Below, one piece after another: positions 1,726-58,992 of a stretch of 64,000 bases of DNA (position 1 is its first letter; each line of letters begins with the position of its first letter). A program made the position numbers and the translations under genes. The notes under the pieces were generated by a model. That model made no database searches. It saw nothing but the letters and a program-made list of their open reading frames with translations, and was not told the DNA's origin. The stretch lies in NCBI RefSeq assembly GCF_046119375.1, contig NW_027362769.1:386074001-386138000 (forward strand), in the 5' to 3' direction. Source of the DNA: Phyllobates terribilis (lineage: Eukaryota).

Positions 1726-4700
1726 CTAGTGAGTAACTATCACCGTCCTTGTTCTTCTGGGGCCTGAATAAGGTCAGCAGGTTCTCATAGTAACAGGGAA
1801 GCCTCACGCTGGTCATGGGGACCCCGATCTCACGGAAATATTCCTCAACTTCTCCTTTCCCATCAAAATTTTGCACTTCCAACTTTCCCTCCGTCAGTTT
1901 CTTCACATTCTCCAGGCCGCTGAAGACCACAATCTTCAGGGCGAGACGCTTGGACAGATCTGCGAATAGTTTACCCTGGGTAAATTTATAAAAGTCTTGT
2001 TAACAGGATCCAGAGCAGCGCTCCATACATTCCACACCAATAGGCTCAGAATGAATCCCACATAATTCGACCGCCTAGTAATGTGGCCATTACCTGTTTG
2101 ACCTCTTTCTCCTTGCTGAAATGCTCCAAAAAGTTGGTGACCACAAACGCCCCATACGCCCCGCTCAGGGCGGCCTCCAGGCTCTTCTCATCATCCAGAT
2201 CCGCAGAAACGACCTCCGCTCCGGCCTCCTTTAGCTTCAAGGCTGCCGGTTTGCTGGTGTCTCGAGTCACTGCCCTGACCGCAAAGCCGCCATCATCCAG
2301 GAGAGCGGCAGCGACCGATCCGCCCTGAGCTCCTGGGGAGAGAAAGAACAAGACATGGCGGACATTAGCACCACAGCCAAACATCTGGCAACTACTTTGC
2401 CATCCAGAAGTTTGGGAAAGCCGAGTGACCACCCTGCAAATATTCACCAACAGTTCTGATTTTGCTGGGACAACCGTCCTTACCAAAACAGGTACCAAAA
2501 GGCGTTACTTGGTGTCGTAGCACCATTTTTTCTGGAGTAAAAAATGGTTTGAATAGCGACTTTTGTTATTTTCATCCTCCCATCCTACCAATATGGACGT
2601 GATTTACTTTATTCAGATGTTTACAGCTAAATAAAACTGCTGCCAGGATGTTTGTTAACCCTTGAAGTTCTGAAGTTCTTCACAGAAATCATATTGTGGA
2701 ATATAAATTGAAAAATTACGATTTTTATTTTTTACCTCCAAAATTTTGCCAGCTTCCTAAAAGGCCTCCATAACCGTCAGACCTCAAAAACGCCAATAGG
2801 ATTAAAGAGGGAGCTCCCTTCCCTTGTTAACCATCTAGATGCTACTGTCATTATTGACTCCAGCATCTAGGGGGTCAGACAGGCACAATTGGTGCTAAGG
2901 CTGATCGTATCGGTTGCAGCAGGGTGTCAGCTGTAGTATACTGGGTGCCATTCTCTTATTCCTCAGATCAGTAAAAATGCACCATTACAGGGTTAAACAG
3001 TGTTTTTTTGTGCTTTTTCTCATATTACACAAAGGTATTTACGCACAGGTATGAGTCGTGGACTCCCTGCCCCCACAGAGGCACAGTGTAAATTTCCGTA
3101 CCAGATATTTCCTTTATGAAATTGCGCCATGAGGAAAGTCACCATAATGAGATGCACATTGCCCCCAGGATTAAAACTGTGGGACGGCTGCCATAATAAC
3201 GGTGGAGCGGTGCCAGGTGAACCTTGACCTGCATGCAGCACAGCAAGCAGAGATGGCACCAAGGCAGAGGCAGCAAAGAATCTGGGGGAACTTTTCAGGA
3301 CAGAAAATAATAAAATTGCTTGTACATGACAGACTCATGCGTATCTTTGCTTTGCTTCCATCGACCAATGCCTTGATCTGAAGCAACACCTGGCAACGTA
3401 TGAGACCCTTCGCGTCATCCCTAAAAGCTCTCCCTAAAGAAGGGTTTCCACGACAGTACATGATGCTGAAACCTGGGATTGTCTAAACTGGACCTACTTT
3501 GGACCCGACCGCCAAGACCACTCTGGGAACCACTGAATAAAACCTTGGTAAGTAACCCATTGTGTTACTAATAATTCAATGTTACCAAGAGGGATCCAGG
3601 ACGGGTAATTGGTGGTCCGATCAAGACAATCTCTGTTGAACCCTATAATTTGTGGTCTGTTATATGTTTCAACATGTCTTTAGATGTATAAGTGACGATT
3701 GAATTAAAATTGGATGAAGTGACAAGTAATCAACTTTGCCCAATATATCTGATCAGGCGCTTTCACAGTTCTTTTTGTATATTTCAGGAGTCGGAGGATT
3801 GTTATATGTTGTCTTCTTTGTCTACATAATGGTTAAGTCTGGATTGATATTGTTGTCAGCTATGAGGATCCTTGAAACAGGGACTGAATGGTCTCTGGTA
3901 TGTTCCTTCACATGTGGTGAAGGAAATATTGGCCCTTAACAAGATCAGGAAAGTGTGACTGTCTATAATAAAGGAATCCTTCATGTAAGGTAGTATTTTA
4001 AGGGTGTAAATATCCCCGGTAAATTGATAAGGGCACCCTCTTGAAAGGGGTGCTGAATGCAACATTAACACCCAGAAACGGCTGGGTGTGTGTACTTGTG
4101 CTTTTGGGGCACTACGCCTTTCCTTTGCAAGCTGCATGTTATCGATGACCAGGACCAGATGTTGAGGACTTCAATGAGGGAGACCACCAGTCGAAAATAA
4201 ACTTTTTACTTAACGATAACTTTGTGGGAATTATGTACAGTAGATAGCGGGCACACAACTTTATGAACATTTCCTTCACAGTACGGAGCATCTTCACACA
4301 CAGTCTCAGTTCCTTTCTAGTTACTCATCTGTTCCCTATCTCCACTCACTGTTTCGCTTTACTTCACCACAACCCAGCTCAGTACTACAGTCCAGTTAGC
4401 AAGAGTCCTATTCTCAACCTGCGGTTCCGTGACTTCTTTCCCGTCAAGGGAACTAGGTTGTCAACATGGCCGGTACTTAGCTTCTCTGCTACTGCCGCCA
4501 TAGAACTCCCGCTTTGGGCACGCTCTCTCTTCGTCTCACATTATCTGTCTCGTCTTAGCCCGTTACCTCTCTGAATTATAAACTTGGGGCCGTGCTGCTA
4601 GGCATCCTCTCCCAGGAACAGTCTCCGATTGATCACTCCGTCGTCCTGTCAGTTTTCCTTCTCTTTTTACTCCGGTTCACACTAACCACCTTCTCAGTCT

Positions 4701-5158
4701 CCCCTCACTTCGGAACACCCACGTCATGTGGTACTACTTACTGTCCAGACCTTAGATCTGCTTCTGAAGCACACTGGTCCCTATCTGATGTCCTGTCAAG
4801 AAAATGTCTCTGTCCCTTCACCTTAGCCCCGCCCACTCTGGGCTAGTCCCAATCATTAACTCTACCTCTCCCTACTGTTGGGCAGAACACGATACCAACA
4901 CTATTAACGCACATCACAGTTTAAATTCTACAATATAACAATACGCATACTCTTCAAGGGGGAACGTGGGCAGTATGTCCATCTCTTTACACAAGCTGCA
5001 GTCAGATGATTGGGACAGTCACAGAATCCTCTCCCCATACAGACACCACCACCTCCTGCAGGGAAACATTTTTCCAAAACTTCGGAACTTTTCCTCCCCT
5101 CCCCTCGCTTCCACTCACCTGTGGCTCCAAAGACTACAAAAACTTTCTTGTCAGCCAT
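1726..5158 (-). CDS. nmral1: NmrA-like family domain-containing protein 1-like, copy A (partial: coding exons 1-3; exons 4-5 expected left of the window)
   Basis: Exons 5158-5119 ([14 protein letters not shown]), 2332-2094 ([24 protein letters not shown]...[15 protein letters not shown]) and 1975-1726 ([11 protein letters not shown]...[35 protein letters not shown]...DSYSL). Sizes 40/239/250 nt, all GT-AG, phases consistent, no stops. GATGAQG Rossmann motif; colinear with human NMRAL1 as I recall it. Orthology to NMRAL1 versus NMRAL2 is not resolved. Confidence 0.92.
2659..2992. mobile_element. piggyBac-like MITE
   Basis: TTAA|CCCT...AGGG|TTAA termini (TTAA at 2655-2658 and 2993-2996). Confidence 0.5.
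4137..4991 (-). mobile_element. Solo LTR-like insertion, 855 bp, in intron 1 of copy A
   Basis: TGT...ACA termini, exactly bounded by the direct repeat CAAGCTGCA (4128-4136 and 4992-5000). AGTAAA poly(A)-like motif near the minus-strand 3' end; no coding capacity. Confidence 0.6.
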
Positions 5159-57100: not shown

Positions 57101-58992
57101 GAGCAGTATTATAGTAGTTATATTCTTGTACACAGGAGCAGTATTATAGTAGTTATATTCTTGTACATAGGAACAGTATTATAGTAGTTATACTCTTGTA
57201 CATAGGGGGAGTATTATAGTAGTTATATTCTAGTACCTAGGGGGCAGTATTATAGTAGTTATATTCTTGTACATAGAGGGCAGTATTATAGTAGTTATAT
57301 TCTTGTACATAGGAGCAGTATTATAGTAGTTATATTCTTGTACATTTTTATACCTAAATGAAACTCCTTTCCGTCGTCACTCTTCTGTGGTTTGAACTCG
57401 TGCAGCAGGTTCTCGTAGTAGAAAGCTACTCGGACACTTGTCATGGGACAACCAATTTCTCGGAAATACTCTTCTACCTCTCCTTTACTGTCAAAGTGAG
57501 GCACGTGCAGCTTTCCCCCGGTGGTCTTCTTCACATTTTCCAGTCCGCTGTAGACTACCAGTTCCAGATTTAGGCGTTTGCACAGATCCGCTACCAATTT
57601 TCCCTGTAACACAAACAATACAAGGAAGGATATTCTTATTCTTTGATACAATTATTTGAGTTTTTCAGGCTCCTAAATGACAAAATGGTTCTTTTATCCT
57701 CGTTGGTGACCTGTCTTCCTTACTGCTTATGACAAAAAAAGCTAAAATACAGACACAGAGTGCAAGTAGGACAATCTGCTACAAGGGGTCACTGCGGAGC
57801 CTTAACCTCTACTCTCAGTTTGCTCCCTGGGAAGGCACATGAGCTCCTGAGACTCCTCACTTTCCTCCATGATCCTCTGGCTGCAGTTTTCCTGCATGGT
57901 CTCCTCATTATCTCACCTGGATAATTTCTTTGTCCTTCTTAGAGCCTTCGAAAGCATTGGTGACTACGAAGGCCCCATACGCCCCGCTCAGGGCGGCCTC
58001 CAGGCTCTTCTCATCGTCCAAGTCCGCGGACACGACCTCCGCTCCGGCCTCCTTTAGCTTTGCAGCTGCCGGTTTGCTGGTGTCTCGAGTCACAGCCCTG
58101 ACCGCAAAGGTGCCATCATCCAGGAGAGCGGAAGCGACCGATCCACCCTGAGCTCCTGGGGAGAGAGGGGAACACACAAGAAAGGCTAAACTAAAAATAT
58201 GTTATGGTCCTGGTGGACATTTGGAGTGAATGAAGTCCCTCAGCCTCACAGCGTGGGTCCCTGATATGAGCTACGTCTTTAGCCATGAGGTCAATGATAA
58301 AATACTGTCTTACTGCAGCCACCACTAGAGGGAGCTCTGGAGCAGTCTGTATACAGTCCTATCACTGGCCTCTTCCTGCAGCCACCACTAGAGGGAGCTA
58401 AGGAGCTGTCTGTATACTGTCCTATCACTGGTCTCTTCCTGCAGCAACCATCAGAGGAAGCTCAAGAGCTGTATGTATAGAGTCCTATCACTGGCCTCTT
58501 CATGCAGCCACCACTAGAGGGAGCTGTGGAGCTGTCTGTATACAGTCTTATCACTGGTCTCTTCCTGCAGTCACCACTAGAGGGAGCTCTGGAGCGGTCA
58601 GTATATAGTCCCATCACTGTGCTCTTCCTGCAGCCAGCACTAGAGGGAGCTCTGGAGCTGTCTGTATACTGTCCTATCACTTGTCTCTTCCTGCAGTCAC
58701 CACTAGAGGGAGCTCTGGAGCAGTCTGTATATAGTCCTATCACTGGCCTCTTAATAAACCCACCACTAGAGGGAGCTCAGGAGCTGTCTGTATATAGTTC
58801 TATCACTGGCCTCTTCCTGCAGCCACCACTAGAGGGAGCTCAGGAGCAGTCTGTATACAGTCCTATCACTGGGATCTGTGTGCATGGTGTCACCAGCGTG
58901 GATGGGGTAGAGCTTGTGCGCTCTGTGGTCCGGTAGTTAGTAATTGACTTACCTGTGGCTCCGAAGACCACGACTACCCTCTTCCCGGCCAT
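48196..58992 (-). CDS. nmral1: NmrA-like family domain-containing protein 1-like, copy D (complete, 296 aa, most divergent)
   Basis: Exons 58992-58953 ([14 protein letters not shown]), 58155-57917, 57603-57354, 48732-48542 and 48366-48196 ([29 protein letters not shown]...AFKW*). 891 nt, GT-AG introns, AATAAA on the minus strand at 48179-48174. Confidence 0.93.
48780..57345. repeat. 35-36-bp AT-rich satellite (gtacataggagcagtattatagtagttatattctt), about 240 copies, filling intron 3 of copy D
   Basis: Continuous array between exon 4 (starts 48732) and exon 3 (ends 57354) of copy D. Confidence 0.98.
58310..58870. repeat. About 62-bp tandem array (core ctgcagccaccactagagggagct) in intron 1 of copy D, about 9 copies
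   Basis: Tandem units; core shared with 22035-22665. Confidence 0.9.

Follow-up and report, generated by a model that had tools for sequence, protein, structure and literature searches.

We analyzed a stretch of 64,000 nucleotides from the frog Phyllobates terribilis (NCBI RefSeq assembly GCF_046119375.1, contig NW_027362769.1, positions 386,074,001 to 386,138,000 of the forward strand), which is referred to below as the window and whose first letter is position 1. A six-frame comparison together with inspection of splice sites revealed four NMRAL1/HSCARG-like genes in these 64 kb, designated here A, B, C, and D. Judging from sequence comparison, the window contains part of a tandem array of NMRAL1 co-orthologs, which belong to a family with an atypical short-chain dehydrogenase/reductase (SDR) fold that binds nicotinamide adenine dinucleotide phosphate (NADP(H)), and we considered both the identity and the history of these genes secure. 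The gene models were as follows (the AB, C, and D types are the orthogroups described further below):

5158-5119, 2332-2094, 1975-1726, minus strand: gene A (AB-type), exons 1-3, from six-frame comparison, splice borders, and tblastn
20456-20417, 15934-15696, 15535-15286, 11290-11100, 10318-10139 (with the stop codon), minus strand: gene B (AB-type), 299 amino acids (aa), from splice borders
41637-41676, 44185-44423, 44658-44907, 45005-45195, 45327-45512, plus strand: gene C (C-type), 301 aa, from splice borders and RNA joints
58992-58953, 58155-57917, 57603-57354, 48732-48542, 48366-48196, minus strand: gene D (D-type), 296 aa, from splice borders and an RNA joint

Coding exons 1-4 measured 40, 239, 250, and 191 nucleotides (nt) in each copy as far as it lay inside the window, and the last coding exon had 180, 186, and 171 nt in B, C, and D, respectively. 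The intron phases (1, 0, 1, 0) were identical among the copies, and all introns had GT..AG borders. Genes B, C, and D were translated without stops, and the reading frame of gene A was open for 176 aa over exons 1-3 before it exited the window. The Rossmann motif GATGAQG was interrupted by intron 1; the first exons were found through FGATG (those of A, B, and D on the minus strand and that of C on the plus strand), and the remaining exons were obtained from an all-against-all comparison of stop-free segments followed by reading of the borders. When the four proteins were compared with the window by tblastn, exactly 18 exons were matched, which indicated that there were no hidden pseudo-exons and that exons 4-5 of gene A were outside the window. 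The limits of the cluster, 1726 and 58992, corresponded to the end of gene A exon 3 and to the ATG of gene D. Protein identity in pairwise comparison was 88% for A and B and 69-78% for the remaining pairs. The original prediction, made from the letters of this stretch, had described four paralogs with equal exon sizes and phases, complete proteins of 299, 301, and 296 aa, and a gene A open over three exons, and all of this was reproduced to the base. Likewise, the GATGAQG motif, Arg37, Lys41, and Lys133 that it had attributed to every copy were found in A-D.

The assignment to the NMRAL1/HSCARG family, which had also been proposed, agreed with the domain search, the structural matches, and the trees. 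Namely, the Pfam domain NmrA (PF05368) was detected above the gathering cut-off in exons 2, 3, and 4 of gene B and in exons 2 and 3 of genes A, C, and D. The closest solved structures were chains of human NMRAL1/HSCARG (2exx, 2wm3, 3dxf, and 3e5m), with E-values of 1.6e-32 for exon 3 and 1.6e-22 for exon 2. Moreover, the window genes were placed in the NMRAL1 clade (support 97/96) and outside the NMRAL2 clade (100/98). Human NMRAL1 scored 554 bits against the Tenrec protein from the NMRAL1 clade and 362 bits against the aardvark protein from the NMRAL2 clade, and therefore it was grouped with the former.

Full-length searches were made with a proxy, the 300-aa Leptodactylus fuscus protein P0014, which was reached by searching a representative library with exon 3 of gene B, and maximum-likelihood trees were built from 150 rows (quick) and 102 rows (careful). 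The nearest protein to gene A was from Ranitomeya variabilis (92% identity) and the nearest to gene B was P. terribilis P0177 (90.6%). Gene C was closest to a protein of Dendrobates tinctorius (94%) and to a fragment from Ranitomeya imitator (97%), and gene D to R. imitator P0271 (94%). All of these nearest proteins belonged to dendrobatid poison frogs, which agrees with the frog host assumed in the original prediction. Several NMRAL1-type copies were present in other frogs as well: 7 in L. fuscus, 6 in Eleutherodactylus coqui, and 5 each in D. tinctorius and Pseudophryne. The neobatrachian sequences formed three orthogroups, D (100/99), AB (100/96), and C (90/92), each of which included myobatrachoid, ranoid, and hyloid species, and genes A and B were nested in a dendrobatoid-only subclade of AB. 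According to the trees, the A/B split is a young local duplication specific to the dendrobatoids. A single clade of all frog NMRAL1 sequences was left unsettled in the careful tree, yet it was not rejected, and its fit equaled that of the free tree (approximately unbiased test, p 0.48).

The genomic location of the relatives was informative too. Xenopus tropicalis had one NMRAL1 copy located between heme-oxygenase and zf-LITAF genes, which we take to be the counterparts of HMOX2 and CDIP1, the neighbors of human NMRAL1. In E. coqui, two tandem copies adjoined the zf-LITAF gene, Nanorana carried three NMRAL1 copies in a row, and a contig of R. imitator had the same convergent arrangement of C and D as the window. 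None of the genes flanking the NMRAL1 locus (HMOX2, CDIP1) was found inside the 64-kb window. Taken together, these four loci and the trees suggested that the array arose by local expansion at the orthologous NMRAL1 locus. As far as can be judged from these comparisons, the expansion is old and general in frogs (it was present in most of them) rather than species-specific, and its starting point was one ancestral NMRAL1 copy located between HMOX2 and CDIP1. The original prediction had viewed the cluster as a candidate lineage-specific family, and this view had to be given up since orthogroups AB, C, and D were common to neobatrachian frogs and only the A/B split was dendrobatoid. The check that it had proposed, a count of homologs and a tree with NMRAL1 and NMRAL2, bore out the multi-copy state in frogs but not the restriction to a lineage, and X. 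tropicalis kept one copy.

A side observation was made at the E. coqui locus (L003, 10001-40007). The public annotation contained a single 30-kb gene there, and the sequence held two complete exon sets (10031-15553 and 31962-40004) and a stray exon 4 at 18101-18292. The annotation appeared to fuse two tandem genes.

The trees also imply that vertebrates ancestrally had two paralogs, NMRAL1 and NMRAL2, rather than one. The NMRAL2 clade included many placentals, marsupials, the tuatara (P0371), salamanders (axolotl P0374), Ascaphus (P0377), and Bombina (P0380), with the genes being intact, and no neobatrachian, pelobatoid, or pipoid member of it was found among the 120 best matches. This distribution hints at a loss of NMRAL2 where NMRAL1 was expanded.

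The copies in the window are intact and under purifying selection. Pairwise Nei-Gojobori estimates for B, C, and D gave ratios of nonsynonymous to synonymous substitution rates (dN/dS) of 0.14-0.21 at a dS of about 1.0-1.5, and the A-B pair had a dS of 0.14 and a dN/dS of 0.46. It had been stated in advance that dN/dS near 1 would speak against functional paralogs; the values of 0.14-0.46 were those of conserved, intact copies. Additionally, a part of gene D was shared with the AB-type copies through gene conversion:

57956-58155, minus strand: gene-conversion tract in exon 2 of gene D, codons 14-80, common to AB-type copies (compared with 15735-15934 in exon 2 of gene B)

The nucleotide identity between B and D was 94% over codons 14-80; it dropped to 54% in codons 81-93 and was 63-69% in exons 3-5. 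The third codon positions were equal at 60 of the 67 sites in codons 14-80. The tract stopped immediately before codon 81, which encodes the distinctive Ala of gene D.

Transcription was followed in contigs of four coded RNA runs from two studies, which were aligned to 43000-48780. Genes C and D were shown to be transcribed and spliced, and gene C to be polyadenylated. Namely, the joints 44423|44658, 44907|45005, and 45195|45327 of gene C (exons 2|3, 3|4, and 4|5) were present in all four runs, and letters of exon 1 were joined ahead of exon 2 as a loose end. An RNA contig extended 80 nt upstream of exon 2 of gene C, which corresponded to a 5' untranslated region of about 40 nt. Non-templated runs of A followed position 45587 in three runs (X11, X6, and X7), and the end of the transcript was assigned accordingly:

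45568-45587, plus strand: poly(A) signal ATTAAA of gene C (45568-45573) with cleavage near 45587, from RNA poly(A) tails

The word depth of the contigs, which is no measure of expression level, was 1e3-1e5 on exons versus 0-50 in introns and intergenic DNA. The splice joints, the poly(A) tails, and the depth limited to exons indicated that the runs were RNA. For gene D, the joint between exons 4 and 5 (48542|48366) was found in two of the four runs (X12 and X6). Moreover, a loose end in X6 behind 48734, at exon 4 of gene D, matched the end of exon 3 of this gene, and thus its minisatellite-filled intron 3 appeared to be spliced out. The remaining two runs contained gene C but not gene D, suggesting that the paralogs differed in where or when they were expressed. 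Over 15286-15934 of gene B, 0.56-0.61 of the words were found in eight RNA-like runs, which was near the expectation for exons only, so these word shares fit transcription of gene B. There was a hint of transcription for gene A. The expression check put forward with the original prediction was therefore passed by C and D, was consistent with B, and gave just this hint for A.

Two further details of the RNA contigs concerned the AB-type copies. At 44231 and 44392, contigs passed from exon 2 of gene C into AB-type letters, with the contigs merging in the converted tract. Loose ends of the A type pointed to other AB-type copies that are transcribed. In addition, one AB-type RNA variant was encoded neither by A nor by B, which indicated that at least one further transcribed AB-type copy was located beyond the window.

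The cofactor site was compared in an alignment of 150 sequences (118 of them from frogs) numbered on the Tenrec ortholog, which equals human numbering. Gly11, Gly14, Gly17, Thr36, Arg37, Asp131, Lys133, and Tyr155 were invariant or nearly so in every group, and Lys41 was invariant in frogs. For human NMRAL1, NADPH binding has been reported to depend critically on Arg37, Tyr81, and Lys133 (PMC4027218). Engineered human proteins in the PDB include 3dxf with Ala37 and 3e5m with Ala81, and the role of Tyr81 was taken from that report and these mutant sequences. Tyr81 of human NMRAL1 was retained in none of A-D. Position 81 was Tyr or Phe in all groups but D; genes A, B, and C had Phe, which also occurred in half of the amniote and salamander NMRAL1 sequences. 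The D-type proteins had Ala (11 of 14), Ser (2 of 14), or Thr (1 of 14) at this position, and gene D of the window had Ala, as in the human Y81A mutant. Additionally, hyloid D-type proteins lacked two residues of the 'GFPGA' loop.

Position 129 was nearly always His in the 150 sequences, with Tyr in a single one, an AB-type copy from Dendrobates. Among the window copies, A had Asn and the other three had His at this position, and thus the catalytic Tyr of the SDR motif (Y-x-x-x-K) was missing in all window copies, as in human NMRAL1. Gene A and its full-length orthologs from Ranitomeya and Anomaloglossus shared Asn129 and Leu82, and the most variable positions of the young dendrobatoid AB copies included 82, 129, 130, 154, and 255-274. 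Lys133, the residue by which a PIP-type reductase would be recognized, was invariant. Because human NMRAL1 requires Lys133 to bind NADPH, this invariance does not show catalysis. The cofactor residues listed in the original prediction (Arg37, Lys41, and Lys133) were right, and the change at position 81 and Asn129 of gene A had been missed.

The upstream regions contained elements of the antioxidant-response element (ARE) or AP-1 type followed by TATA boxes, identified by motif reading:

5247-5256, minus strand: ARE/AP-1-type element GCTGAGTCAC, 89-98 bp upstream of the ATG of gene A, with TATATAA at 5195-5189
20569-20578, minus strand: one-mismatch copy GCTGAGTGAC upstream of gene B, with TATATAA at 20519-20513
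41541-41550 and 41549-41558, plus strand: overlapping ARE cores ATGACTGTGC and GCTGAGTCAC, respectively, upstream of gene C, with TATAAGG at 41575-41581
59077-59086, minus strand: ARE/AP-1-type element GCTGAGTCAC, 85-94 bp upstream of the ATG of gene D, with TATAAGA at 59066-59060

Read on the opposite strand, GCTGAGTCAC gives GTGACTCAGC, an antioxidant-response core with an AP-1 site inside it. The core TGACnnnGC was present in the proximal promoters of A, C, and D and, with one mismatch, in that of B; in gene C, a second, inverted core overlapped the first. The 10-mer GCTGAGTCAC occurred 3 times in 64 kb versus 0.10 expected, and all three occurrences (A, C, and D) were on the strand of the gene, 79-98 bp upstream of the ATG. 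No similarity among the upstream regions (160 bp before the ATG) was detectable save between A and B. Conservation of the ARE was compared at four other frog loci. X. tropicalis had GCTGAATCAC..TGACAC at the corresponding position and, farther upstream, a perfect TGAGTCAGCA, and E. coqui retained TGAGTCAC..TGACA at the corresponding position. It has been reported that NMRAL2P, the remnant of the human paralog, is a direct target of NRF2 (PMC7555619). The inducible promoters that had been suggested for these genes thus have a motif-level basis in the predicted ARE/AP-1-type element and TATA box upstream of each ATG.

The rest of the window was rich in repeats, and about 47% of it was minisatellite DNA with units of 23-109 bp:

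48782-57345, no strand assigned: minisatellite with a 35-bp unit, about 243 copies, GC content about 0.32, 8.5 kb, filling intron 3 of gene D
8519-9335, 11513-13426, 16528-17300, 22050-22609: minisatellite arrays
26125-39403, 42098-42719, 58308-63993: minisatellite arrays

One family with a 31-bp unit recurred at 11513-12029, at 12622-13426 (inverted), and at 61613-63993. A different similarity was noticed between 43011-43139 on the plus strand (intron 1 of gene C) and 15125-15250 on the minus strand (just downstream of exon 3 of gene B), which were 67% identical over 42 translated aa. The similarity probably reflects a dispersed repeat rather than an exon. Other protein-coding genes and extra NMRAL1 pseudo-exons were considered for the window and rejected, since tblastn returned only the 18 exons and the remaining long open reading frames were located within minisatellites.

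As the preferred interpretation, to which we assigned a probability of about 0.55, we hypothesized that the array encodes ARE-driven NADP(H)-binding NMRAL1 co-orthologs, which would be subfunctionalized in their expression and in the nicotinamide side of the pocket and would act as NADPH-state-dependent regulators like NMRAL1. According to this model, each copy would bind NADP(H) via the conserved GxxGxxG/Arg37/Lys133 site, like human NMRAL1, and would be driven by a TATA promoter with an ARE that is recognized by NRF2/small-Maf or AP-1. Based on the NADP(H) site and the ARE promoters, we infer that the array may be a stress-responsive set of NADPH-binding proteins. The subfunctionalization would proceed through expression and through changes around the nicotinamide pocket, where gene D would have the natural equivalent of human Y81A and gene A would have H129N and W82L. 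The least secure step is the last one, in which the copies would act as NADPH-state-dependent regulators rather than as proven reductases. As to the original interpretation as a whole, its claims on the family, the intactness, and the conservation of the copies were upheld, and the lineage-specific expansion was not.

Several points weighed against this model. The sensor-like behavior was carried over by analogy from the human protein, and families of xenobiotic-metabolizing enzymes are likewise marked by tandem birth-and-death evolution, promoters with AREs, and variable pocket positions. NADPH binding may be weakened or abolished by Ala81 of gene D, in which case the mechanism would not be common to all copies. 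At the promoters, the element of gene B had a mismatch, TGAGTCA by itself is an ordinary AP-1 site as well, and no canonical element was found within 300 bp in two ranoid C-type genes (Nanorana and Pyxicephalus). Furthermore, the expression evidence consisted of contigs from coded RNA runs, which do not yield expression levels, and gene A was known from exons 1-3 only.

It was possible, if tentative, that the copies are instead true NADPH-dependent oxidoreductases on small molecules such as quinones, electrophiles, imines, and possibly dietary alkaloids. They would then make up a detoxification family inducible by NRF2 and descended from an ancestor of the sensor type. In favor of this are the tandem expansion found in many frogs, with its lineage-specific turnover, the ARE-type element in the proximal promoters, and the invariant Lys133, which corresponds to the Lys that serves as general base in NmrA/PIP-type reductases. 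However, no copy had the SDR catalytic Tyr, position 129 being His or Asn, and the sequence allowed no inference of a substrate; the link to alkaloids is speculation. Members of the NMRAL1 branch are not known to be catalytically active, and enzymatic activity was not described in the NMRAL1/HSCARG literature that we examined. On the other hand, the nearest solved relatives other than NMRAL1 were named enzymes by their depositors (5f5l/5f5n 'Monooxygenase' and 7uf8 CtdP), positive selection has been reported on frog NMRAL1 duplicates (PMC11342244), and the young dendrobatoid copies varied at 82, 129, 130, and 154, positions beside or inside motifs linked to NADPH binding, with the flanking residues fixed. 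We also considered a broader version, in which frogs would have turned the NADPH sensor gene NMRAL1 into an NRF2-inducible family diverged in its cofactor/ligand pocket, with some members being NADPH-dependent reductases or binders of xenobiotics, in poison frogs possibly dietary alkaloids. We regarded this version as doubtful. The putative pocket divergence cited for it comprised Ala81 in D, Asn129/Leu82 in A, and the variable positions 82, 130, 154, and 255-274; if true, this version would mean a previously unrecognized vertebrate detoxification family.

A further alternative, which we judged improbable, is that neutral birth-and-death duplication in a region rich in repeats produced copies that are largely redundant, contributing dosage at most and no distinct functions. 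The minisatellite DNA that makes up about 47% of the window would favor unequal exchange, gene conversion homogenized exon 2, and the A-B pair was young, with a dS of 0.14, and its dN/dS of 0.46 was relaxed. However, the three orthogroups were kept with strong support across Myobatrachoidea, Ranoidea, and Hyloidea, the dN/dS of the older copies was 0.14-0.21, and there were changes fixed within orthogroups, namely Ala, Ser, or Thr at residue 81 in 14/14 D-type proteins and the two-residue deletion of the hyloid D type. The conversion tract that ends just before codon 81 of gene D and the lack of D in two runs containing C also argued against redundancy. Finally, the copies could be non-catalytic proteins that bind small molecules, buffering or sequestering ligands in the pocket beside the cofactor, and we regarded this as improbable, too. 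Human NMRAL1 was reportedly crystallized with drug-like acids (2wm3/2wmd), the word depth on exons in the RNA contigs was very high (with the reservation that it does not measure expression level), and positions predicted to be adjacent to the pocket differed between the copies. This explanation rests on analogy, however, and the proteins had no signal peptide and would be cytosolic.

As genome annotation, the outcome was an ordinary one, i.e., expressed paralogs of a known family. Mammalian NMRAL1 is treated as a single-copy redox sensor. Compared with it, the three old conserved paralog lineages and the young duplicates of frogs constitute a comparative series on NMRAL1-type function, which addresses tuning of the set-point of an NADPH sensor versus gain of catalysis, and one of the lineages (D) has the natural counterpart of a human mutation at an NADPH-critical residue. 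The most useful leads were the natural Ala81 of D and the shared ARE-type element.

Among the known systems, the closest one was human NMRAL1/HSCARG itself. The frog proteins were similar to it in length (about 299 aa) and about 60% identical as measured against the Tenrec ortholog P0022, and they shared the NmrA fold family, GxxGxxG, Arg37, Lys133, and H-x-x-x-K where SDRs have Y-x-x-x-K. The heme-oxygenase/LITAF-like gene neighborhood was also shared with the human gene by the X. tropicalis and E. coqui relatives. In contrast to human with its one gene, frogs carried several tandem copies. Furthermore, position 81 was Phe (A-C) or Ala (D) instead of the human Tyr, gene A had Asn129, and the hyloid D type was two residues shorter in the 'GFPGA' loop. 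The sensor behavior of the human protein comprises a dimer-monomer switch and the partners ASS1 and NF-kB. Enzymes of the NmrA superfamily (PIP-type reductases, CtdP 7uf8, and 5f5l/5f5n 'Monooxygenase') had in common with the window genes the Rossmann NADP(H) site, the NmrA Pfam domain, and a Lys at the position of Lys133, but the similarity was distant (E from 1e-11 to 1e-36 versus 1e-166 for NMRAL1). The architecture of NMRAL1 is also that of its ancient tetrapod paralog, the NMRAL2 lineage (represented in human by the pseudogene NMRAL2P), and the link of this lineage to NRF2 parallels the ARE-type elements found here, although the window genes fell outside its clade.

The last comparison was with the frog duplicates described previously. 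Duplication of NMRAL1 with positive or intensified selection has been reported in Pristimantis, Nanorana, and Scutiger and tied to high elevation (PMC11342244), which was the only study that we found in the literature on NMRAL1 in amphibians or Xenopus. Thus, the duplication and selection in frogs were already known from that work, as were the paralogs of related frogs from public annotations. The same gene family was duplicated in those frogs and in the window. Unlike in that study, where duplication was linked to elevation, the orthogroups found here spanned lowland frogs as well. Since they were present in lowland frogs of all major neobatrachian lineages, the duplication predated those high-elevation habitats and was far older and more general, and the published link between NMRAL1 duplication and high elevation can be corrected accordingly.

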